DNA of 64,000 nucleotides. Source: Macrostomum lignano. Lineage: Eukaryota. The position numbers were made by a program, and so were the translations under genes. This document shows positions 1 to 55,418 of this stretch, in pieces (position 1 is the stretch's first letter; the number at the start of each line of letters is the position of its first letter). The DNA lies in assembly GCA_002269645.1 (NCBI GenBank), contig NIVC01003412.1, forward strand, positions 35,280-99,279. The letters run 5' to 3'. The notes beneath the pieces were generated by a model. That model searched no databases. It saw only the letters and a list, made by a program, of their open reading frames with translations, and was not told the DNA's origin.

Positions 1-611
1 ATTGCTGCCGATCTCTGTTGCAGCCACCTTCCAGATGGAGCTCTTGCCCAGCAGCCAGCACAGTCCAGTCAATGTCCGAGTCTGCAGCTGTCCTGCCGTT
101 CACTTGCACCAGACTGTTGGCCCAGCCCTCTGCGTAGTTGCCTGTCATCCGCCTGCCATCCTGTGTGACGACTCGAGCGACTTCTTCAAGCCAGTCAGCC
201 AGTCTCTGCTGACACTTTGCTCTCTGCTCGGTGAATCCTGCCTTGGTGAGCAGTCGATGCAGCTCCTCGCTCAGGCGCCTGTCTAGCTTGGAGCCGTCTG
301 AGAGCCTGGAATGATCCAAGATGCGTGTGGGTGACTTGCTCAGAGTTGGATGAACAAAACAAGCAGGAGACCTGAGAGTGCAGCTGCTGCAGCACTCAGT
401 CCAACCCAATCTCAACCCTCCTGAGTTTCGCTGCAATTTCTGTCGCGAGCTGCCAGCCTGTTTGGAAAGCGCAATGTGGCAGTGAAATCCAAACCGGTCA
501 GACTCACTGATAGAGGCCGAATTGAAGCGTTGAGTGGCTGCCCGCCAGGCATCTGGGCTTCTGCAATGCGTGAATGAAAGGTTCACTTTCTGGATCGGGG
601 GTTTGAGAATT
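1..611 (-). CDS. Mab-21/cGAS-like nucleotidyltransferase (cGLR) exon, continues beyond window start
   Basis: Stop-free minus frame from acceptor ccacag| (612-614) to base 1, not in the ORF track: ILKPPIQKVNL...LDRRLSEELHRLLTKAGFTEQRAKCQQRLADWLEEVARVVTQDGRRMTGNYAEGWANSLVQVNGRTAADSDIDWTVLAAGQELHLEGGC. G-[S/N]-x-x-E-G followed by S-D-h-D (G at 140-142, DID at 68-76) matches the pol-beta/Mab-21 NTase active-site pattern, preceded by a long helical segment. Confidence 0.75.
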
Positions 612-915
612 CTGTGGTGGAAGTTTTAGAAAAGAAGTGCTTGTTTCTTGCATAATATAAAATACTTAAATATAAAATACTGCTTCATTTTATATTTCTC
701 TAAATTCTGAATTCATCCCTTTTTATATTAAGATAAGATTTCGACCGTAACTAGGAGAGAAAGAATCGAAGAACCACTCCCACTTATTATTCTCCCACTT
801 TTACCAGTTAGCTATAAAACAAAAAGATAACAGTTTCATTTAGAAATTAGTGGTCGAGCCATAGTGTGCTAAACTTGATGCATGTATTCCAAAATTGGCG
901 AAACTCCTCACTTAC

Positions 916-1808
916 TCCGTTCCAATAGGATCCAGCAGTCGCAGCACCTGCCACTGCTCAAATCGCTGTGCCACCTGCGCACACGTCAGATCCCGGCAGT
1001 CTCGATGACTCGAATCCGCTTCTTTGTCCATCAGAGCCTTGGCTGCTCGCAGGTGACCGGCTTCGCACGCTCGCGACAGAACAGTTCGACTCCGACTGTC
1101 TTCAGCATGCACTGAGGCATTGAAATCGATCAGTTTCTCAATGAGCTCGTGATAACCTGCATCAGCTGCCAGCATGAGAGCAGTGGCACCAGTGCTGTCT
1201 GGCAAATCTACATGCTTTGAGCTGACTCGCTCATCATTGATCAGTGTGACAGCAAGAGCAACATGTCTTTGAGAGATGGAGAGACGAAACAGCTGTGTGA
1301 TGCGAGCTGGCTGCATTCGAGAGAGAGTGTCGCTGAGAACAGAGTTCATGCCTTCGATGGCCGTTGCTGCAGTGAAGCTAAAAATGCTATTGGACTGGAA
1401 GAGCCAGTCAGGCTCGAGGCCGAGGGAAGCAACATCTTCGTGAAGACGAGAGCAAGCCGCGACTGCACAGTGGAAACGGAGATTCGCACTTTGATCTGGA
1501 CTTGAGAGACAAGAGAGGAGGAACTTGACGACTTCTAAGTGACCATTTCTTGCAGCATATTCCGCAGCCTCAATGCAGCACTGGTCTCTGTTTGTTTCGC
1601 CAGAGACTGTCGACACAAGAAACTTGACGACTTCTAATTTACCGTATTTTGCAGCCGATTTGGCAGCGTTGATGCAGCAGTTATCTCTTTTTGTTTGTTC
1701 AGCGATTATGTGCACGAGAAACTTGACGACTTCCAACTGCAGTCCATTGGCTTGCAGCATATTTGGCAGCGTTGATACAGCAGTGATCTCTGTTTGTTTG
1801 TTCAGCAA
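916..1808 (-). CDS. Ankyrin-repeat exon, spliced to the NTase exon
   Basis: ORF 912-1808 has ankyrin motifs (AARNGHLEVVKFLL; GATALMLAADAGYHELIEKLIDFNASVHAEDSRSRTVLSRACEAGHLRAAKALMDKEAD). Donor GA|GTAAGT at 915 and acceptor CAG|A at 612 join in phase 2 (GA+A = Glu) and keep frame. Confidence 0.85.
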
Positions 1809-2165
1809 CTTTCGGCACGAGAAATTTTACGACTTCTAATTTACCGTATTTTGCAGCCGATTTGGCAGCGTTGATACAGCAGTGATCTCTTTTTGTTTGT
1901 CCAGCGATTATGTGCACGAGAAACTTGACGACTTCCAACTGCAGTCCATTGGCTTGCAGCCGATTTGGCAGCGTTGATGCAGCAGTGATCTCTTTTTGTT
2001 TGTCCAGCGATTATGTGCACGAGAAACTTGACGACATCCAACTGCAGTCCATTGGCTTGCAGCATATTTGGCAGCGTTGATGCAGCAGTGATCTCTTTTT
2101 GTTTGTTCAGCGACTGTGTGCACGAGAAACTTGACGACTTCTAACTGACCATGTTTTGCAGCAAG
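1520..2165 (-). repeat. Tandem 99/103-bp ankyrin-like units (33 aa), three carrying the same +4-nt frameshift
   Basis: Unit EVVKFLVHIIAEQTKRDHCCINAAKSAAKYGKL repeated about 6 times. The variant gctgcaagccaatggactgcagttggaa (28 nt versus 24 nt) occurs near 1740, 1945 and 2045 and explains the overlapping ORFs 1699-1938, 1841-2065 and 1908-2123. Confidence 0.85.
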
Positions 2166-2392
2166 ATTTGAAGTGTTTTTGCAAATTAGATATGTTTTCT
2201 CCCTGCTGAAGATTTAGATAATGTCTAACATTTTCCTTGGTTTGCTGTGGAACTAGAAGATAAATATTTTTCCGGTCTATGTGTGTAGTGTTTGAATTTT
2301 GCAAGTGCAGAGAGAGGGAACAAAGGGCGTCGCTTTGCAGCTGTAATTTTTAAACGAATTTTGAAGAATGTTATGAATCCTTCTTATGATAA

Positions 2393-2512
2393 TTGGCTGC
2401 TGTCAGAGTGGCAGATGTCAGTCGCGGCTGCTGTCAGAGTGGCAGATGTCAGTCGCGGCTGCTGTCAGAGTGGCAGGTGTCAGTCGCGGCTGCTGTCAGA
2501 GTGGCAGGTGTT
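2393..2512. repeat. 31-bp minisatellite, about 4 copies
   Basis: ggctgctgtcagagtggcagatgtcagtcgc in tandem. Confidence 0.9.
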
Positions 2513-2999
2513 TCAAAGGCTTGTACAGCCGGTTGCCAGAAAGATTTTACCGCCTTATGTCTCAGCTGCTCATCTTTTTGCAGTCTCTGGCGAGCGCTGA
2601 CCACAACAGCCTTATCAATAGTAACTTATCTTCATTGCATGAGAGCTGAATTTGCCCTCTGAGCTCTCCAACCCCCAGCATGGCAACAGAGGCTGCGGCT
2701 GCAACGGCCACCCCAGCTGTACTTGATGAGGCTGAGAGCACTCATTGTGCCTCAGTGCAGGCTGAGATCTGTAAACGTATTTAATAGCTTACTGAGCGGT
2801 GTAAAATGCTGCTCAGACTCTCACCTGTACTCAGCGTGTTTTGGTCTATTTAAAGCAAAGCAATGAATTGCTTGAAATTGCATCAGTTGGGTGAGTTATT
2901 GATTGTGATTGATTGTGAACGATACATCATATCTAAATCAATCCAGAAAGTCAATTGACTTACGGCACTCTTGAGTTTCAGTTTCTGTCGAAGCCGCCA

Positions 3000-4414
3000 A
3001 ATCAGTCAATACACCTCATTTTTAGCATCCTGTTTGCTAGAACCGCTTCCAACGGATTCATTTCTTGCATTCTGTTTTTCAGAACCGATTCCAACGGATT
3101 CATTTCTTGCATTCTGTTTTCCAGAACCGATTCCAACGGATTCATTTCTTGCATTCTGTTTTCCAGAACCGATTCCAACGGATTCATTTCTTGCATTCTG
3201 TTTTCCAGAACCGATTCCAACGGATTCATTTCTTGCATTCTGTTTTCCAGAACCGATTCCAACGGATTCATTTCTTGCATTCTGTTTTCCAGAACCGATT
3301 CCAACGGATTCATTTCTTGCATTCTGTTTTCCAGAACCGATTCCAACGGATTCATTTCTTGCATTCTGATTTCCAGAACCGCTTCCAACGGATTCATTTC
3401 TTGCATTATGTTTGCTAGAACCGCCTCTTGTAAATTGTAACATCTACACACGGATTGGATGGCCCATCGACCTTTTAAGCGAAGGATTCTGATTTTTCAA
3501 TCAGATGACTATAATAATGACTATGGTGACTCGACTATAATTAATATCAGTGGCGTTGACACAGTAGCAGGTGATGCTGTGTCAGATGGTTTAGTAATCG
3601 TTGAAATGAAGTTAGCAGCCCTTAGCAACAGTTCTGAAATTGCTGAAATGACAGCCCGAGTATTGCAGCTTGTGAGCTCACGCGCAGTGCTTCTGCTCTC
3701 TGGAAAACTTATGAGAACGAACATTGAACTGCTACAGTTACTGAACTCGACAGACGCTTTGTCTGATGCATCAACTTTCAGGGTTGAGCACGGACCTGAC
3801 ACTGCAGCTGAACCACTGAAAGACAAGATGATGCTTAAAGTTTTAGGATGCATTTTAATATAAATAAAAACTAAGACAGCAGCCATGTTCAATGCTGACT
3901 CACACGAACCCTTTAGCTGTGGCAACCGGCTTCAATTCACACGCACCAAAACCGTTTCTTTTAGGAGAGAGCACTGAGGCATTGGCTGCACTGTAGAACA
4001 TGCCGAGCCGCACTGGGCTGCTCAAGTTCTCAAGTTCAGAGGCCGTCTGCACGGGTTCAACGAGAGTCTGGCTGTGTCTGAAAGCGTTTTGTTGCTCACT
4101 TTTATAATAAAATAGACAGGGAGATGGAGATTAAAAACACATTCTGCTGAGACACCGCTCACTTGCACTAATGAGACTGCAAATATGACATGTTGGAGAA
4201 GCTGTCACAGCTGTCACAGACGCTGTCACATTCACAGCGTAGCAGTTTCAGTTGAAGCTGAGCAATGTCTCAGTGAGCAATGTCTCAGTGAGCAATGTCT
4301 CAGTGAGCAATGTCTCAATGGCAGAGTCCAGGGAGAATGAGCAGGAGTCTCAGCTTGACTTGAGCGGCACGTTGATACCTTGAGTCCCAGCTTGCCTCCA
4401 CCGTGAGCGGGAAC
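3000..4414 (-). pseudogene. Receptor paralogue A (exons 3-5 only, disrupted)
   Basis: CTL-like exon 4163-4414 has a 15-bp unit (gagcaatgtctcagt) x4 that creates stops. Exon 3904-4077 has an 8-nt duplication (gaacttga x2) with frameshift. The last exon (GSAAVSGPCSTLKVDASDK...) is near-identical to paralogue E but the TM region is broken by stops. No exon 1-2 upstream. Confidence 0.75.
3035..3425. repeat. 42-bp tandem repeat, about 9 copies, in tail region of paralogue A
   Basis: agaaccgattccaacggattcatttcttgcattctgttttcc in tandem; gives 14-aa periodic ORFs in several frames. Confidence 0.95.
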
Positions 4415-4795: not shown

Positions 4796-7700
4796 TTACT
4801 GGAATCGAAGACGTAACGACATTACTTCTAATGCATATCTTGCTTTGCTGAGGTGGAAACTTTTACAGCTTTCGGTGGCTAACTTAATTATATAATTTTT
4901 CAACACGAATAATGCAATGCAAAATTTTTGTGGATGAGTGTAGCTCCAGCGCTGAGTCAAAACTGTAAAACTAGCCATCCAGTGGCGCAGCAGGTTGCCA
5001 ATCAATGCGCCGAATGACGCATCTGGTAGTGCATCGAGTGATGCATCGGGCGGGGCATCAGGTAGTTCATCGGGAGGCTCATCGATTTGTACATCATTTG
5101 GAGCATCCGATTGCGCATTGATTGGTGAATTCGGTGGCATAACATCCAGTGGAACACCTGGTGGTGGTGCATCAAGTGGCTCATTGAGCTGTGCATCATG
5201 TGGCGCATCCAGTGGTGCATCGAGTGGCTCATCTGGTGGCTCATCTGGTGGCTCGTCGGGTGGCTCGTCGCGAAGGGCATCAAGTGGCGCATCCGGTGGC
5301 TCATCGGATGGCTCGTCGGGTGGCTCATCGGCTGGCTCGTCGGGTGGCTCATCGGCTGGCTCGTCGGGTGGCTCATCGGCTGGCTCGTCGGGTGGCTCGT
5401 CGGATGGCTCATCAGGTGGCTCATCGGCTGGTTCATCAGGTGGCTCATCGGCTGGTTCATCAGGTGGCTCATCGGCTGGCTCATCAGGTGGCTCATCGGC
5501 TGGTTCATCAGGTGGCTCATCGGCTGGCTCATCAGGTGGCTCATCGGCTGGTTCATCAGGTGGCTCATCGGGTAGAGCATCAAGTGGCGCATCCAGTGGT
5601 GCAACTGGTGGTTCATCGGGTGGATCATCGCGTAGAGCATCAAGTGGATCATCCAGTGGTGCATCGGCTGGTTCATCAGGTGGCTCATCGGGTGGCTCAT
5701 CAGGTGGTTCATCGGCTGGCTCATCAGGTGGATCATCGCGTAGAGCATCAAGTGGCTCATCCAGTGGTGCATCGGCAGGTTCACCAGGTGGCTCATCGGC
5801 TGGTTCATCGCGTAGAGCATCAAGTGGCGCATTCAATGGCGCATCAATTGGCCAACTATAAATGGCGTTTTGGGCCATACTGCGCTGATCGTATGGGCAG
5901 CTCTCGTTTAAAAGGTAGCAGTTTTCTGAAGTACTCGTTGAAGCCTTGCTTGCATTACCTACTGAAGCGCCACCTGAAATCCCAGTTTCATGCTTAATCA
6001 AAGGTTGGAAAACATTTTTCAGTGGTTCAATATCAGCATTTCCTTTCTCAACAAACTGCTCAGAACTATTTAATGAGGTGTAACGTCTTTTGCAGACGAT
6101 AATTATCACAATGGTTATAATTACAAGGACCACCAGAATCGGACAGGAAACTCCAACAATTACAGCCAAGTTACTTGCTGGAGCTTCAGTTGAGGTATGG
6201 TCTGGTGCTGATTGCACTGTTTCTGATAATAACATTCTGCCACTTGATTCAATAGAATTTATCGGCTCTTTAGCGGTCCATTTCTGTCGCGGCGTTTTCA
6301 GAACTTTCCAAATGACCGTCTTAGCGAAACAGCTGGCTGGATAGGGTCCCATAGTGCCTCCTCTCTCAGGAAACTTTACAAGAAATGGAATCTGGCTGCT
6401 ACAGCTTTTCGATTTGATTTCCGCTCTGTCCGAAGCATCCACATTCATAGTCACGCACGGACCTGTCGCGCCGTTTGACTCTCTGTAGTTATTTAAAGGT
6501 GGTTCCAGGTTAACTCGCAGCTTATTTTTCATAGCCTCTTCTGTTTTACAGAAGATGAAACGGAATTACTCACACAAAACCCTCAGATCTGAGAACAGGC
6601 TTCAATCCACATTCACCGCTATCCTGTCTGATTAGAGAGGTCACTGAGGCATCGGCTGCACTGTAGAACATGCCGAGACGCACTGGCTGGCTCAGGCTCA
6701 GGGGCCGTCTGTACGGGTGCAACGACAGTCTGGCTGTGTCTGAAACCGTTTTGACGCTCATTTTTATAATAAAGTAGCCATGGAAATTGAAAACAAATTA
6801 TCAGAGTCGTTACTCACTTGCAGCAATCAGACTGCGGATTTCAGTCATGCTGGAGAAGCTGGCCAGCTCAGCATCGCCTCTGATGCTGGACATTGCGACT
6901 GTTAAATTGGCTTTGACTTTGCTCACAGCGTAGCAGTTTCCGTTAAAGCTGAGCATGTCTCTGTGGCAGAGTCCAGGGAGAATCAGCAGGAGTCTCAGCT
7001 TTACCTGGGGGGCACGTTGGTACCTCGGATCCCAGCTTGCCTCCACCGTGAGCGGGAACCTAAAATAGTAATGTGATTTTTGTTTACCAATTGTCGGAAC
7101 ACAATTATTTTGGTCGAGTGGAGACCGTAGCGCAAAGTCATAGTGCTTGTTGACCTGAACGCCTTTATGCCCGAGAGATTTGACCGACATTGAACTAGAA
7201 AGCTCCTAGAATTATTGATTAACTTTAACCATTGTATATTTTTATACTCGTAGTCAAGGTAAAACATCTTAGATCTACCAATATATTTTAACGTCTTGTT
7301 ATTTGTACCTGAGGACATCTAGATTATACTCGTACGAAACGACCAACTAACTACCGTAACTGTATTTCCCGCAACTAGCGCTTCTAAATAGGTTAAGCAA
7401 AACAAAGCTGACCGCGAGGTCGAACTTAGTGAGTAGTACGCCGGTTTCAGTGTTAGTTTTTAAATTTGTAATTAATTTAATTGTTATGCTGTATTTTCTC
7501 ACAGTATTGTCAATAGCGAGTCTGAGAAAGAATAATGTTCATAGCAGACTGAATTGCCATGGAACTTTCATGGAACAACCGTGGAATTACCACGGATTTT
7601 CGACGGAATTACCGTTTGATGTTTTCAGAGTGTTGCTACTTTTCAATTTCTATAGCTATTTGATCCTGTTATTATTTCAATCGCACCCCGTGTGAGCTAT

Positions 7701-21179: not shown

Positions 21180-23757
21180 AAGGACAGTGCCCCCTACTCA
21201 AAGACAGTACCCCTACTTAAAGGCAGTTACACCTACTCTAAGACGGTACGCTACTCTGAGATAGTACCCTACTCTAAGACAGTACCCTACTCAAAGACAA
21301 TACCCTACTCAAAGACAGTACCCTACTCAAAGACCATACCCTACTCAAAGACAGTACCCTACTCAAAGACAGTACCCTACTCTAAGACAGTTATCCCTTC
21401 TCTAAGACAGTACCCTACTCAAAGACAGTGCCCTACTCTAAGCTAGTACCTTACTCCAAGACAGTACCCTACTCTAAGACAGTACCATACTCAAAGACAG
21501 TACCCTACTCTAAGACAGTACCCTACTCAAAGACAGTACCCTACTCAAAGACAGTACCCTACTCTAAGACAGTACCCTACTCTAAGACAGTGCCCTACTC
21601 TGAGCCAGTACCTTACTCCAAGACAGTACCCTACTCTAAGACTGTACCCTACTCTAAGACAGTGCCCTACTCTGAGCCAGTACCTTACTCCAAGTCAGTA
21701 CCCTACTCTAAGACAGTACCCTACTCAAAGACAATTAACTCTACTCATAAGGCAGTACCCTACTCAAAGACAGTACCCTACTCAAAGACAGAACCCTACT
21801 CAAAAACAGTACCCTACTCAAAAACAGTACCCTACTCAAAGACAGTTATCCCTTCTCTAAGCCAGTATCCTACTCAAAGACAGTACCCTACTCTAAGACA
21901 GTACCCTACTCTAAGACAGTACCCTACTCTAAGACAGTACCCTACTCAAAGACAGTACCCTACCCAAAGACAGTACCTACTCAAAGACAGTACCCTACTC
22001 AAAGACAGTACCTACTCAAAGACAGTACCCTACTCAAAAGCCAGTACCCTACTCAAAGACAGTTATCCCTTCTCTAAGCCAGTACCCTACTCAAAGACAG
22101 TTATCCCTTCTCTAAGCCAGTACCCTACTCTAAGACAGTACCCTACTCTAAGACAGTACCCTACTCTAAGACAGTACCCTACTCAAAGACAGTTATCTCT
22201 ACTCAAAAGACAGTACCCTACTCAAAGACAGTTATCTCTACTCAAAAGACAGTACCCTACTCAAAGACAGTACCCTACTCAAAGACCATACCCTACTCAA
22301 AGACAGTACCCTACTCAAAGACAGTACCCTACTCTAAGACAGTTATCCCTTCTCTAAGACAGTACCCTACTCAAAGACAGTGCCCTACTCTAAGCTAGTA
22401 CCTTACTCCAAGACAGTACCCTACTCTAAGACAGTACCTTACTCAAAGACAGTACCCTACTCTAAGACAGTACCCTACTCAAAGACAGTACCCTACTCTA
22501 AGACTGTACCCTACTCTAAGACAGTACCCTACTCAAAGACAGTTATCTCTACTCAAAAGACAGTACCCTACTCAAAGACAGTACCCTACTCAAAGACAGA
22601 ACCCTACTCAAAAACAGTACCCTACTCAAAGACAGAACCCTACTCAAAAACAGAACCCTACTCAAAGACAGTACCCTACTCAAAGACAGTTATCCCTTCT
22701 CTAAGCCAGTATCCTACTCAAAGACAGTACCCTACTCAAAGACAGAACCCTACTCAAAAACAGTACCCTACTCAAAAACAGAACCCTACTCAAAAACAGA
22801 ACCCTACTCAAAGACAGTACCCTACTCAAAGACAGTTATCCCTTCTCTAAGCCAGTATCCTACTCAAAGACAGTACCCTACTCAAAGACAGTACCCTACT
22901 CTAAGACAGTACCCTACTCTAAGACAGTACCCTACTCAAAGACAGTACCCTACCCAAAGACAGTACCTACTCAAAGACAGTACCCTACTCAAAGACAGTA
23001 CCTACTCAAAGACAGTACCCTACTCAAAAGCCAGTACCCTACTCAAAGACAGTTATCCCTTCTCTAAGCCAGTACCCTACTCAAAGACAGTTATCCCTTC
23101 TCTAAGCCAGTACCCTACTCAAAGACAGTTATCCCTTCTCTAAGCCAGTACCCTACTCTAAGACAGTACCCTACTCAAAGACAGTTATCCCTTCTCTAAG
23201 ACAGTACCCTACTCAAAGACAGTGCCCTACTCTAAGCTAGTACCTTACTCCAAGACAGTACCCTACTCTAAGACAGTACCTTACTCAAAGACAGTACCCT
23301 ACTCTAAGACTGTACCCTACTCTAAGACAGTGCCCTACTCTGAGCCAGTACCTTACTCCAAGACAGTACCCTACTCTAAGACAGTACCCTACTCTAAGAC
23401 AGTACCCTACTCAAAGACAGTTATCTCTACTCAAAAGACAGTACCCTACTCAAAGACAGTACCCTACTCAAAGACAGAACCCTACTCAAAAACAGTACCC
23501 TACTTAAAAACAGAACCCTACTCAAAAACAGAACCCTACTCAAAGACAGTACCCTACTCAAAGACAGTTATCCCTTCTCTAAGCCAGTACCCTACTCAAA
23601 GACAGTTATCCCTTCTCTAAGCCAGTACCCTACTCAAAGACAGTTATCCCTTCTCTAAGCCAGTACCCTACTCAAAGACAGTTATCCCTTCTCTAAGCCA
23701 GTACCCTACTCAAAGACAGTTATCCCTTCTCTAAGCCAGTACCCTACTCTAAGACAG
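21180..23757. repeat. 18-bp satellite with higher-order structure
   Basis: agacagtaccctactc(a/t)a, about 140 copies; the marker variant gtgccctactctaagctagtacc recurs at 21428, 22380 and 23222. Confidence 0.95.
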
Positions 23758-24170
23758 CAGCATTCTACTCAAACGCAAAGATTATTTTGATTTCTATTCG
23801 AAACAAAACATTTTTTAAGGATAGTACATACTTTGAAGTATATCTGATATTGTGCTGAGCAAACCGTTATTTTTTTCTGCGAATGACTAGCAATTGAATT
23901 CAAATATTGTCACAATTGTTACGTCGAAATAACATAAAACGTCTTAAAACTTTCCTCAAAACAAAAGTATCATTTTCCATACAGTGGCCCTTTTAACATT
24001 AATCAATTGCTTGCCATCATTACTGTTATATAGCTAGATTATAAATCTAGTATTACATGTCGTATAGAAGTCCTTGATCGTAACTTTCGCAGACAGATAA
24101 GGTTTCCCAGACAGTTCTGTGAGCCATTCAAAAAATCACATCATTTGAACTTCTTACACTATAGAAATAA

Positions 24171-26156
24171 TGATGAAGACGCACTTTTTCCCAAATCCCG
24201 CGCTAGCACATGGGCTCTAAACTTACTTGCCTACTAACAGTGGGCAATGGGCATTTTTATCCTTTTTCTGCGAATTTTCATAGAATCTATACTAGATATA
24301 ATGTCTGGTCATACTAGTAGTCATAATAACATAGGCGCAGCTTTTTGGGTCATAAATCATCGCTTTCAAAGTTGGTCTGACAGCCACCTGCGCCTCACTC
24401 AGTGTTGAAGCGGGCGCCAGATGGTCTGAGAGGATGCGGGCGGTAGCTTTTTTCTCATCATTTTGACAGGCCATCAAGATTTATGAGGCCAGAGCCTATT
24501 GTTCGTGTTCACTCAAGCGTGTGACAGCTTTGACAGCTATGCGTTTTACCCCTAAAAGTACCTTGGGATTAGCGATTAGCAATTTCTCTTCATTATCTTT
24601 CACTTTCTATTTAATAAGAGCTTTCTAATGTATATTTTCTCATTAATTTCTGTCAATCCTACGCGAAAAGTCATAAATCATTTTGTTGCGATTTTGAGTG
24701 ATTTATGGCCGCACCTGTCATCTTTTTACGACCCTGTGGGAACTGATAGGATCTCTCGGTCACGTGATTCTGGGTGGCAACAAGCTTAACCAATCAGAAA
24801 ATTCGGCGCTCATTTTAACAAAACGGCTCAGCCAATCAGAATCGACGTGTTCCATTATAACAAACTGCTGTCCAGTTGGCGGCTATTTAAAACCGGCGTT
24901 TTTGGCCCGCTCGGACCTCAACCTCCTGGGAACTTGGCCTCGCTTGAGACCTCCCGGAGCCTGACCGTCGTTTCTTGATCGCCGGATTGCGACTTCCCCC
25001 CATCATCATCAAGGACGAGTCCCCCGGTCATCAGCAGCGAACATCAAGTGAAGAGCATCACCTGCTAGCTAACAGCGAAGATTGTGACAGCATCATCCCG
25101 AGTCTACAGCTGCAGAGCATCAAGCCGATTCGGTCACTGTGGATTACCTGGTCTCCGGCTGCTGAGTTTCTGATTGGTTGGGTGAGAGGCTACCTAGACT
25201 TGCTTGATTGGGTGATCCCTTTTCTGTCCCCTGTTTCAGTAGCTGAATTAGGCGCACACTTTGCTCTTTTTGTTCAGTAGTGCTTTCGCTGAGGCAGAAA
25301 TCATTCAATAATACTGCTAGTGGTCTAAGACTCCAATTCAATCTGAAGTGTGAAGTGAACTAAGGAGAAGATTAAATCTAACAGCTATTTTTATCGGTTT
25401 TATTTCTTTGATCGCCGATGGCTCAGATGAGTGGCTAAGCTAGTAGGCGCCGGTCACAGTGGACCAATGGCAAGGCAGTTCTCAGTCGACCAATCTATCA
25501 AATCAGTGAGCAAAACTGCCAGAAGTGCAGAATCGGCGCCAGAGATGTACTTTGTGCACTCTAGGGTAGCCAAGCGGCTCGGGTAATGAATCATGCGGTC
25601 TCCGAAGTTCGAGTTAGCCTATCATCAGCGCTAGGAGAGGCTAGTTGGCGCGTTGAAGGCCAAAAGTACATACCTTCGTATTTAGCAATGTAATAGTACA
25701 TGTAGCTACCCCATAGACTCGCCACCGCAAGAATCCCCTGCACAAGTCCCCTCTGTACCTGCATGGCCAATACGATCTAGTCCCAGCAGTGTCCCTTATC
25801 ATCGGCTATGACTTCGAGATTGACAGCAAAAAGACACTAGTTGGCAGGTAAGTACAAAGCCCCTTCTAGTCGGAAGCCCGATTTCGAGAGTCCCGGTGTG
25901 GTGAGCCAGGGCGCACGGGCTGGTGGCAGCAAGTTAGTTGATCTGCGGATTAGCTAATTTCTATTTTCAAAATTCTCCCTGCTCGTCTCTCGCTGTCCCT
26001 CTCTTAGCTATAGGACCTAGACTGTTCGCCACACGATCAAGCTACCATGGGGCTGACCATCTGACAGGAGTGGGGGGCCAGGTCTCTAATTGATTTATTT
26101 CTGAGCCTGAGGCCCGAAGGCTTCCCTAACAAGGGCCCGAAGGTCGAAACCCATCA
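24171..26156 (+). mobile_element. Solo LTR (1986 bp), family 2, copy 1
   Basis: TGATG...CATCA termini, TSD ATAA (24167-24170 and 26157-26160); tandem CCAAT boxes (~24790, 24831) then ctatttaaa (~24883); highly similar along its length to 53432-55418. Confidence 0.85.
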
Positions 26157-53431: not shown

Positions 53432-55418
53432 TGATGAGGACGCACTTTTTCCCAAATCCTGCGCTAGCACATGGGCTCGAAACTTACTAGCCTACTAACA
53501 GTGGGCGATGGGCATTTTTATCCTTTTTCTGCGATTTGTCATGGAATCTATACTAGATATAATGTCTGGCCATACTAGTAGTCATAATAACATAGGCATT
53601 GTATTTTGGGTCATAAATCATCGCTTTCGAAGCTGGTCTGACAGCCACCTGCGCCTCACTCAGTGTTGAGACGGGCGCCAGATGGTCTGAGAGGATGCGG
53701 GCGGTAGCTTTTTTCTCATCATTTTGACAGGCCATCAAGATTTATGAGGTCAGAGCCTATTGTTCGGATTCACTCAAGCGTGTGACAGCTTTGACAGCTA
53801 TGCATTTTACCCCTAAAAGTACCTTGGGATTAGCGATTAGCAATTTCTCTTCATTATCTTCACTTTCTATTTAATAAGAGCTTTCTAATGTATATTTTTT
53901 CATTAATTTCTGTCAATCCTACGCGAAAAGTCATAAATCATTTTGTTGCGATTTTGAGTGATTTATGGCCGCACCTGTCATCTTTTTACGACCCTGTGGG
54001 AACTGATAGGATCTCTCGGTCACGTGATTCTGGGTAGCAACAAGCTTAGCCAATCAGAAAATTCGGCGCTCATTTTAACAAAACGGCTCAGCCAATCAGA
54101 ATCGACGTGTTCCATTATAACAAACTGCGGTCCAGTTGGCGGCTATTTAAACCGGAGTTTTTGGCCCGCTCGGACTAACTCTTGCTCGGGCCCAGCACGC
54201 AACTTCTGGTTCCCGAAGCGCGACCGTCGTTTCTTGATCCCCGGATTGCGACTTCCCCCATCATCATCAAGGACGTATCCCCCGGTCGTCAGCAGTGAAC
54301 ATCAAGCGAAGATCATCACCTGCTAGCTATCAGCGAAGATCGTGACAGCATCATCCCGAGTCTACAGCTACAGAGCATCAAGCCGATTTGGTCACTGTGG
54401 ATTACCTGGTCTCCGGCTGTTGAGTTTCTGATTGGTTGGGTGAGAGGCTACCTAGACTTGCTTGATTGGGTGATCCCCTATCTGTCTCCTGTTTCAGTAG
54501 CTGAATTAGGCGCACACTTTTGCTCATTTTGTTCAGTAGTGCTGTTACTGAGGCAGAAGTCATTCAACAATACTGCTAGTAGTCTAAACTCCAATTCAAT
54601 CTGAAGTGTGAAGTGATCTAAGGAGAAGGTTAAATCCAACAGTTATTTTTATCGGTTTTATTTCTTTGTTCGCCGATGGCTCAGATAAGTAGCTAAGCTA
54701 GTAGGCGCCGGTCACAGTGGACCAATGGCCAGGCAGTTCTCAGTCGATCAATCAATCAAATCAGTGAGCAAAACTGCCAGAAGTGCAGAATCGGCGCCAG
54801 AGATGTACTTTGTGCACTCTAGGTTAGCCAAGCGGCTCGGGTAATGAATCATGCGGTCTCTGAAGTTCGAGTTAGTCTATCATCAGCGCTATGAGAGGCT
54901 AGTTGGCGCGTTGAAGGCCAAAAGTACCTATCTTCGTATTTAGCAATGTAATAGTACATGTAGCTACCCCATAGACTCGCCACTGCAAGAATCCCCTGCA
55001 CAAGTCCCCTCTGTACCTGCATGGCCAATGCAATCTAGTCCCAGCAGTGTCCCTTAAAATCGGCTATGACTTCGAGATTGACAGCAAAAAGACACTATAG
55101 TTGGCAGATAAGTACTAAGCCCCTTCTAGTCGGAAGCCCGATTTTGAAAGTTTCGGTGTGGTGAGCCAGGGCGTACGAGCTGGTGGCAGCGGGTTAGTTA
55201 TAATCTGCGGATTAGCTAATCTCTACCTTCAAAATTCTCCCTGCTTGTCTCTCGCTGTCCCTCTCTTAGCTATAGGACCTAGACTGCTCGCCACAGATCA
55301 AGCTACCATGGGGCTGACTATCTGACAGGAGTGGGGGGCCAGGACTCTAATTGATTTATTTCTGAGCCTGAGGTCCGAAGGCTTCCCTAACAAGGGACCC
55401 GAAGGTCGAAACCCATCA
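53432..55418 (+). mobile_element. Solo LTR (1987 bp), family 2, copy 2
   Basis: TGATG...CATCA, TSD AATA (53428-53431 and 55419-55422), inserted in an AATAT-rich tract. Confidence 0.85.

Follow-up and report, generated by a model that had tools for sequence, protein, structure and literature searches.

The window analysed here is a stretch of 64,000 nucleotides from the flatworm Macrostomum lignano (assembly GCA_002269645.1, contig NIVC01003412.1, positions 35,280 to 99,279 of the forward strand). Its left end carries, on the minus strand, a gene in which ankyrin (ANK) repeats precede the beginning of a nucleotidyltransferase (NTase) domain resembling those of cGAS and of the cGAS-like receptors (cGLRs). 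The region 1..2229 is likely to represent the 5' two-thirds of an unannotated ANK-cGLR paralogue, probably a compromised one, in which an ankyrin exon, a short linker exon and a first NTase exon follow one another, while the rest of the NTase core and the helical C-lobe would lie past the left edge (Table 1). When window 1..3000 is read on the minus strand, the open reading frame (ORF) at 1808..916 is found by Pfam to contain several 33-residue ANK repeats (Ank_2 2.3e-21, Ank 5.5e-16 in four stretches, Ank_4 8.8e-12); its first ATG stands at 1760, and its 3' end reads GGA/GTAAGT (the slash marks an exon boundary), a phase 2 donor with its GT at 915-914. Beyond this donor and in phase with it, the frame from 611 to base 1 has no stop and codes for two helix-prone segments followed by MTGNYAEGW ANSLVQVNGRTAA DSDIDW, with the Gly-Asn codons at 142..137 and Asp-Ile-Asp at 76..68. 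An earlier note on this DNA had pointed out that this coding segment is absent from the ORF list, which is explained by its leaving the window at base 1, and had described a helical segment before a TGNYAEGW-x13-DSDIDW motif; both the helix-prone segments and the x13 spacing are seen in the translation, and in the structural model of the paralogue P0025 the corresponding "spine" helices span H2-18 and H23-44. As 611 nucleotides remained open in this way in only 2 of 20,000 shuffles, and as the translated NTase exon matches M. lignano proteins with E = 2e-47 and 80-86% protein identity, the frame is real coding sequence and not a product of chance.

Table 1. Parts of the ankyrin-NTase gene at the left end of the window, in 5' to 3' order of the gene (P, proteins used for comparison; L, paralogous loci)
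Feature	Window positions	Strand	Basis
Decayed 5' leader and tandem array of 33-residue ankyrin-type repeats	1810..2229	-	Tandem Repeats Finder; comparison with P0038/P0031
Open ankyrin-repeat exon, 298 codons	916..1808	-	ORF list, Pfam; 81% identical to P0025 residues 2-149
Intron 1 (GT 915-914; preferred acceptor AG 562-561)	561..915	-	L001/L003 alignment, P0025 gene
53-nt linker exon (..SPDAWRAATQRFNSASI..)	508..560	-	Homologous to the short linker of P0002, P0006, P0031 (..AAAHRLNSGLHRLS..)
Intron 2, 210 nt, GTGAGT...CTCTCAG	298..507	-	Conservation of the two splice sites; annotation of the P0025 gene
First NTase exon: two predicted spine helices, M-T-G-N, 20-residue loop, D-I-D-W (76..65)	1..297	-	92% DNA identity to L001 3468-3855

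The ankyrin exon can be joined to this frame in two ways, as the junctions 916 to 611 and 916 to 560 are both in frame and translate without a stop. The earlier note had proposed the former. The open frame itself is upheld, and so is the possibility of an in-frame join to an unlisted exon, but the paralogues favour the acceptor at 561/560 over the one at 612/611. Two paralogous loci, L001 (NIVC01003220.1) and L003, cannot be aligned to the window upstream of the acceptor ..CATTGCAG/A at 561/560 (conserved form ..TTC.CGCATTGCAG/A) and are well conserved from there on. P0025 maps exactly onto L003 as five exons, namely an ankyrin exon, a 51-nt mini-exon, a 54-nt linker exon, an NTase exon and a last exon. 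The acceptor of its linker exon is ..CCGCATTGCAG/A and the donor /GTGAGTCTGACCG, and its NTase exon begins at ..CATTCCAGGCTCTCAG/A, which is also the window acceptor at 298/297; the window donor TCA/GTGAGTCTGACCGG at 508/507 is conserved in L001 and L003. The window therefore has three conserved sites in common with the annotated P0025 gene (561/560, 508/507 and 298/297) and, because of these sites and of the point at which conservation starts, 1808..916 / 560..508 / 297..<1 is, by comparison with the paralogous DNA, the best-supported exon model, with the predicted spliced product ...LLDPIGTE-SPDAWRAATQRFNSASI-N-GSKLDRRLSEELHRLL... The alternative acceptor, AG 613-612, is preceded by a good pyrimidine tract, and its use would lengthen the product by 17 residues, as many as the P0025 mini-exon encodes, but the site shows no conservation with L001 and L003. 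In the case of this mini-exon, a side observation is that it seems to end at a GC donor (..CTAAG/GCAAGG.., L003 ~6621-6733), which would make the intron that follows a GC-AG intron.

A single exon running from 611 to 1 was also considered, and was ruled out by the L001/L003 comparison and the P0025 exon map, which place the conserved intron 507..298 inside it. That this intron is open in frame is unremarkable and attributable to chance, since a given frame stays open in about 5% of shuffles; the homologous interval of L001 (3168-3407) contains a 50-bp tandem-repeat expansion. The window edge truncates the first NTase exon about 65 nt short of its expected donor. Upstream of the gene, a block at 2511-2895 is 82.5% identical to L003 4025-4410, ahead of the ankyrin array in both, which indicates that the duplicated unit of the gene family includes a common 5' flank, possibly a promoter or a 5' exon. 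Directly upstream of the decayed 5' end of the gene, 2395-2511 consists of 3.8 copies of a 31-nt tandem repeat with 98% match.

The order of domains seen in the window gene, ankyrin array first and NTase second, is that of its paralogues. Ank and Mab-21_C occur together in the single proteins P0025 (548 residues), P0027, P0029, P0033 (630 residues) and P0038 (1217 residues), so that the fusion of an N-terminal ankyrin module to a cGLR NTase, as the earlier note had put it, is found in full-length paralogues (P0025, P0038 and P0033). That the window locus belongs to this ANK-cGLR family is nearly certain, and that its ANK and NTase parts are joined in one transcript is very likely. Nearly all the matches of the window exon, of the paralogue P0023 and of the family profile bear M. 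lignano names, the exceptions being P0020 (Logan) and P0028 (JGI), which by itself assigns the window to this flatworm or to a species very near it. An exhaustive HMMER search with an NTase-only profile returned 1,049 representatives (clusters at 50% identity) with E <= 1e-3, 80 of them with E <= 1e-30; all eight named representatives sampled among the top 113 were from M. lignano, and the weaker matches (E ~1e-15) were ordinary Mab-21/Mab-21_C proteins from other assemblies. Long ankyrin arrays precede the Mab21 part in six of the seven M. lignano proteins scanned, and in most family members these arrays are built from tandemly duplicating 33-residue units. Judged from these matches, the genes combining ANK with a Mab21/cGAS-like NTase are a large radiation confined to the Macrostomum lineage. 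Neither a homology search nor an exact look-up of the ankyrin ORF from its first ATG found a gene model identical to the window locus in the protein collection.

The attribution of the NTase part to the Mab-21/cGAS-like enzymes, also made in the earlier note, is supported by the family profile, the fold, and the third catalytic Asp and C-lobe of the paralogues, but not by the window exon alone, which has no Pfam match. Among the paralogues, PF03281 (Mab-21) was never matched and PF20266 (Mab-21_C) was matched in seven of nine members, with scores of 24.0-26.8 bits that are borderline with respect to the cut-off of 24.1. Full-length queries containing the ANK part gave only ankyrin and designed ankyrin repeat protein (DARPin) matches, both in the profile search of the PDB and in Foldseek, and both were repeated with the NTase part alone. 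The profile of this part matched the PDB sequences of cGAS (1.5e-6, profile positions 177-278), Sp-cGLR1 (8gjy, 3e-5), MAB21L1 (0.029) and MB21D2 (0.1), the only further match being an SH3 domain with a non-significant E of 1.2. AlphaFold2 gave a moderate predicted local distance difference test score (pLDDT) of 67.7 for a full-length paralogue; for the NTase part of P0025 it gave a pLDDT of 58 and a predicted TM-score of 0.67, the spine and C-lobe being confident and the N-lobe poor. The fold of this model is cGAS-like: the best 50 PDB matches listed by Foldseek are all MAB21L1, Sp-cGLR1 or cGAS (E ~1e-4, TM 0.3-0.4). Structural homology to the cGLRs and other cGAS/DncV-like nucleotidyltransferases (CD-NTases) is thus predicted, for the paralogue P0025 only.

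The catalytic columns are conserved in the family. Aligned with hhalign to the human cGAS sequence that Li et al. 2023 (bioRxiv, PMC9980059) list in Table S3, the family segment ..GNQPAVTATACGVRPAQD.. falls on cGAS ..GGSPAVTLLISEKISVD.., the last residue of which is Asp319, and ..GNQPAVT..PAQD.. is placed on ..GGSPAVT..SVD..; the third catalytic Asp of cGAS thereby coincides with a conserved Asp/Glu. The same alignment pairs ..VHLVRATRP.. with ..FYLVPKHAK.. and ..ELRVSFSFQEK.. with ..TWRLSFSHIEK... In a MAFFT alignment taking in cGAS, six invertebrate cGLRs and the M. lignano sequences of the screen by Li et al. (Table S3), columns common to the family, cGAS and the cGLRs hold the GS, the DxD and the third Asp, the flatworm family being distinguished by a 10-residue insertion between GS and DxD and by a much shorter N-lobe. 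We had considered that the near-invariant His of ..VHLVRATRP.. might replace the third Asp, making the family inactive; this was rejected, since both alignments place that strand on cGAS ..FYLVPKHAK.. and the true column is that of ..PAQD... The spacing in P0025, GS-X20-DIDW-X55-QDT (A-Q-D-T after X55), is within the cGLR definition of Li et al., h[QT]GS-X8-20-[DE]h[DE]h-X50-90-h[DE]h (PMC9980059). In the window, a spacer of 20 residues (YAEGWANSLVQVNGRTAADS), the upper limit of X8-20, is followed by D-I-D-W at 76..65 in the place of [DE]h[DE]h, and the start of the motif reads M-T-G-N where the definition has h[QT]GS. Around the third Asp stand conserved Cys/His clusters (..HLEG.C..C.. and ..ACGVRPAQDTCHAIECCSSFC..), for example at P0025 residues ~285-345; they might bind a metal at a place other than that of the cGAS zinc thumb, no thumb being present at the corresponding position in the family.

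This departure at the start of the motif sets the window copy apart from its relatives. All 105 family motifs (from 188 proteins retrieved) have Gly-Ser; the window has Gly-Asn, and thus not the h-G-[G/S] motif of the earlier note, with an AAC codon at 139..137 where L001 has AGC. A second kind of damage is found upstream of 1808, where the N-terminal array that is in frame as protein in P0031 and P0038 cannot be translated. Tandem Repeats Finder describes 1649-2147 as 4.9 copies of a 103-nt period with 87% match; the units, with the consensus ..CCINAAK.AA..G.LEVVKFLV....QT.RD.., start at 2141, 2038, 1935, 1836, 1733, 1634 and 1535, with periods of 103, 103, 99, 103, 99 and 99 nt, and each of the three units of 103 instead of 99 nt shifts the frame and is followed by stops. 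Consistently, the N-terminus of P0038 (leader and first repeats) maps to the window in the successive frames -2, -3, -1, -2 and -3, and the 5' leader has no ATG at the position homologous to the P0038 start. The window copy could at best start from an internal ATG, and is most likely decaying or catalytically weakened. As the same 103-nt variant occurs three times, the shifted unit must itself have been duplicated or homogenised, unless the assembly contains a systematic error. Compared with L001, the NTase exon has 27 differing sites and a ratio of nonsynonymous to synonymous substitution rates (dN/dS) of ~0.77, a weak test that suggests almost neutral evolution with respect to the closest sampled paralogue. 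Decay is common in the family, the ankyrin exon of L001 having two frameshifts. Taking all this together, along with the lack of a matching gene model, we lean, by a little, towards a copy that is catalytically impaired or pseudogenic.

A number of observations weigh against a compromised copy, or against reading the locus as a cGLR gene. No stop interrupts the three window exons and each of the four splice sites is intact, as would fit a gene that is still expressed; a plain pseudogene is a rival reading of this locus. The dN/dS value comes from 27 differences only, and its comparator, L001, is itself damaged. In principle, errors of assembly could account for the 103-nt units that shift the frame and, since in L003 an array also lies upstream of the annotated P0025 start, an untranslated array alone does not mean a dead gene. 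Loss of activity through the Asn is an inference, because we know of no cGLR in which Asn has been tested at the Ser position. The window holds only the spine helices and first strands of the NTase; the third Asp and the C-lobe are beyond its left edge and are seen in paralogues only. We are not aware of an enzymatic product of any family member. The last point against is taken from the literature: in the screen of 140 purified enzymes by Li et al., five M. lignano proteins (nos. 89-93 of Table S3, NTase-domain constructs) have a blank Note column, in which the 15 active enzymes are marked (PMC9980059).

These five proteins are "not among the marked active enzymes", which does not equal inactive, and the screen says little about an ankyrin-dependent mechanism, because its constructs were NTase-only and its ligands were dsDNA (double-stranded DNA) and poly I:C (PMC9980059). 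Two of them, no. 92 (PAA93208.1) and no. 93 (PAA68676.1, BOX15_Mlig016402g1), read ..TGSYAEGWANSL.QVNGRTAADSDIDWTVLVAGQEFHLEGGCNRSRSSC.. and are close paralogues of the window gene. Li et al. curated about 3,000 animal cGLRs, with ANK-cGLR as a named category (Fig. 1C/S2A) and M. lignano members among the cGLRs with putative active sites; Table S2 gives PAA67649.1, PAA58690.1, PAA68676.1, PAA86972.1, PAA45980.1 and PAA68216.1 as M. lignano cGLRs with Ank_2, and M. lignano is absent from the table of cGLR and STING counts (Table S5). A literature search for Macrostomum with STING, cGAS or cGLR found nothing beyond these supplementary tables, and no main-text discussion of Macrostomum cGLRs. The ANK-cGLR architecture is therefore already known, having been published in 2023 with M. 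lignano included, and its description as hidden and functionally uncharacterised in the earlier note was overstated; the locus itself is a real paralogue of a catalogued family, unannotated and probably compromised.

The nearest known relatives are the M. lignano ANK-cGLRs of Li et al. (for example PAA68676.1, PAA93208.1, PAA62074.1, which is P0038, and the BOX15_Mlig009574g1 protein, which is P0025). They come from the same species or lineage, have the ankyrin array, ankyrin exon, linker and Mab21/cGLR domain in common with the window gene, use homologous splice sites and are 72-76% identical as protein to the visible NTase exon. The window copy differs in its Gly-Asn, its frame-broken 5' array, the lack of a gene model in the collection and its truncation at the edge. 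In the case of cGAS and the animal cGLRs (human and mouse cGAS, Drosophila cGLR1, S. pistillata Sp-cGLR1), the Mab21 NTase fold and helical C-lobe are shared with the family, and GS, [DE]h[DE]h, the third Asp and the RLSFS-x-EK and SYH-KT motifs align with it. In sequence, the similarity reaches significance in the C-lobe half alone, and the flatworm family differs in the insertion between GS and DxD, the shorter N-lobe, the N-terminal ankyrin array, the lack of a zinc thumb at the corresponding position and a Cys/His cluster adjoining the third Asp. MAB21L1 and MB21D2 have the same fold and are among the best structural and sequence matches, with no demonstrated enzymatic product. According to Li et al. 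(PMC9980059), MAB21L1/2 are developmental proteins that consist of a single domain, are highly conserved and have no predicted functional active site. The flatworm family, by contrast, evolves fast, has radiated within one lineage and has an active-site motif and ankyrin fusions. The coral ANK-cGLR reported in 2023 (Fig. 4C) is another fusion of a cGLR core with ankyrin repeats, from an invertebrate whose cGLR repertoire has likewise radiated, but the coral belongs to a different phylum and has several STING genes.

By analogy with cGAS and the cGLRs, intact members of the family would bind nucleoside triphosphates through GS, DxD and the third Asp, and, once activated, would synthesise a nucleotide second messenger. 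The ankyrin array would serve as a protein-interaction module, and probably as a sensor, a partner-docking site or an autoinhibitory element. In the window copy, the change from Ser to Asn and the frame-broken 5' array and leader would mark a gene that is decaying or catalytically weakened.

It is unlikely that the window gene is instead a fully functional ANK-cGLR innate-immune sensor, in which the ankyrin part senses a ligand or restrains the enzyme and a cyclic dinucleotide is made for a STING-type receptor. The open exons and intact splice sites would agree with such a sensor, as would the complete h[QT]GS-X20-[DE]h[DE]h-X55-h[DE]h arrangement of the family and a fold matching cGAS and Sp-cGLR1. 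The window copy, however, has G-N where 105 of 105 relatives have G-S, its 5' array is frame-broken, and its third Asp and C-lobe are outside the window; besides, none of the enzymes marked as active by Li et al. is from M. lignano, and the species is missing from their STING counts (PMC9980059).

Somewhat less probable still is that the family, the window copy included, consists of non-enzymatic Mab21-type scaffolds or signalling adaptors using the NTase fold for binding, as has been proposed for MAB21L1 and shrimp Mab21. The position of MAB21L1 among the best structural matches, the unusually compact N-lobe with its 10-residue loop insertion, and the absence of recorded activity for the five M. 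lignano proteins (PMC9980059) are in keeping with adaptors, and a 2026 paper reports that crustacean Mab21 proteins act outside the nucleic-acid-sensing paradigm (PMC12928593). The conservation of GS, DxD and the third acidic residue across divergent members (33-90% identity) is, however, hard to explain without catalysis. That the ankyrin and NTase parts belong to two adjacent genes, and not to a fusion, is very improbable: NCBI does annotate L001 as a 79-residue Ank gene and a partial 329-residue NTase gene (P0023), but two frameshifts in the L001 ankyrin exon (L001 2192-2675) explain this split annotation, intact paralogues with homologous splice sites are annotated as single ANK-Mab21 proteins, and the splice phases match in the window.

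Beyond the compromised paralogue that we favour for this locus, the radiation as a whole, with at least 80 clusters at 50% identity, invites a speculation to which we give little credence, namely that it constitutes an NLR-like, rapidly diversifying repertoire in which the ankyrin array, and not the back face of the NTase, recognises non-nucleic-acid ligands such as pathogen proteins, and in which Gly-Asn copies would be catalytically dead decoys or regulators rather than pseudogenes. If true, this repertoire would exist in a phylum where cGLR signalling has otherwise been reported as mostly lost. The window locus alone matters little, being a truncated and probably degenerating paralogue whose close relatives were cloned earlier. 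The family is of interest all the same, as for none of the ANK-fused cGLRs is a ligand or a product known, and the natural Ser-to-Asn copy offers a ready comparison for whether catalysis is needed. Macrostomum is a tractable flatworm within that same phylum, for which RNA interference and transgenesis are available.

Elsewhere in the window, two stretches, 24990-25178 and 54308-54436, match residues 1358-1412 of P0040, a 2381-residue M. lignano protein, with 60% and 84% identity; the matched residues are not in its ANK/Mab21 part, and the two stretches probably represent a dispersed repeat. The minus-strand frame at 4796-6532 is an ATG-started ORF of 578 residues with one hydrophobic segment and a long Pro/Asp/Glu-rich region, which is coded by a 24-nt repeat (26.6 copies at 5194-5832); its only Pfam match is a sub-threshold one to KIAA1549 (21 bits), and an exact look-up found no identical gene product on record. 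A 42-nt tandem repeat at 3016-3423 (9.7 copies, 96% match) is open in several frames on both strands and has no protein-family match. Finally, the 2-kb bin at 22001-24000 is anomalous in composition, with a GC skew of -0.48 and an AT skew of +0.21.

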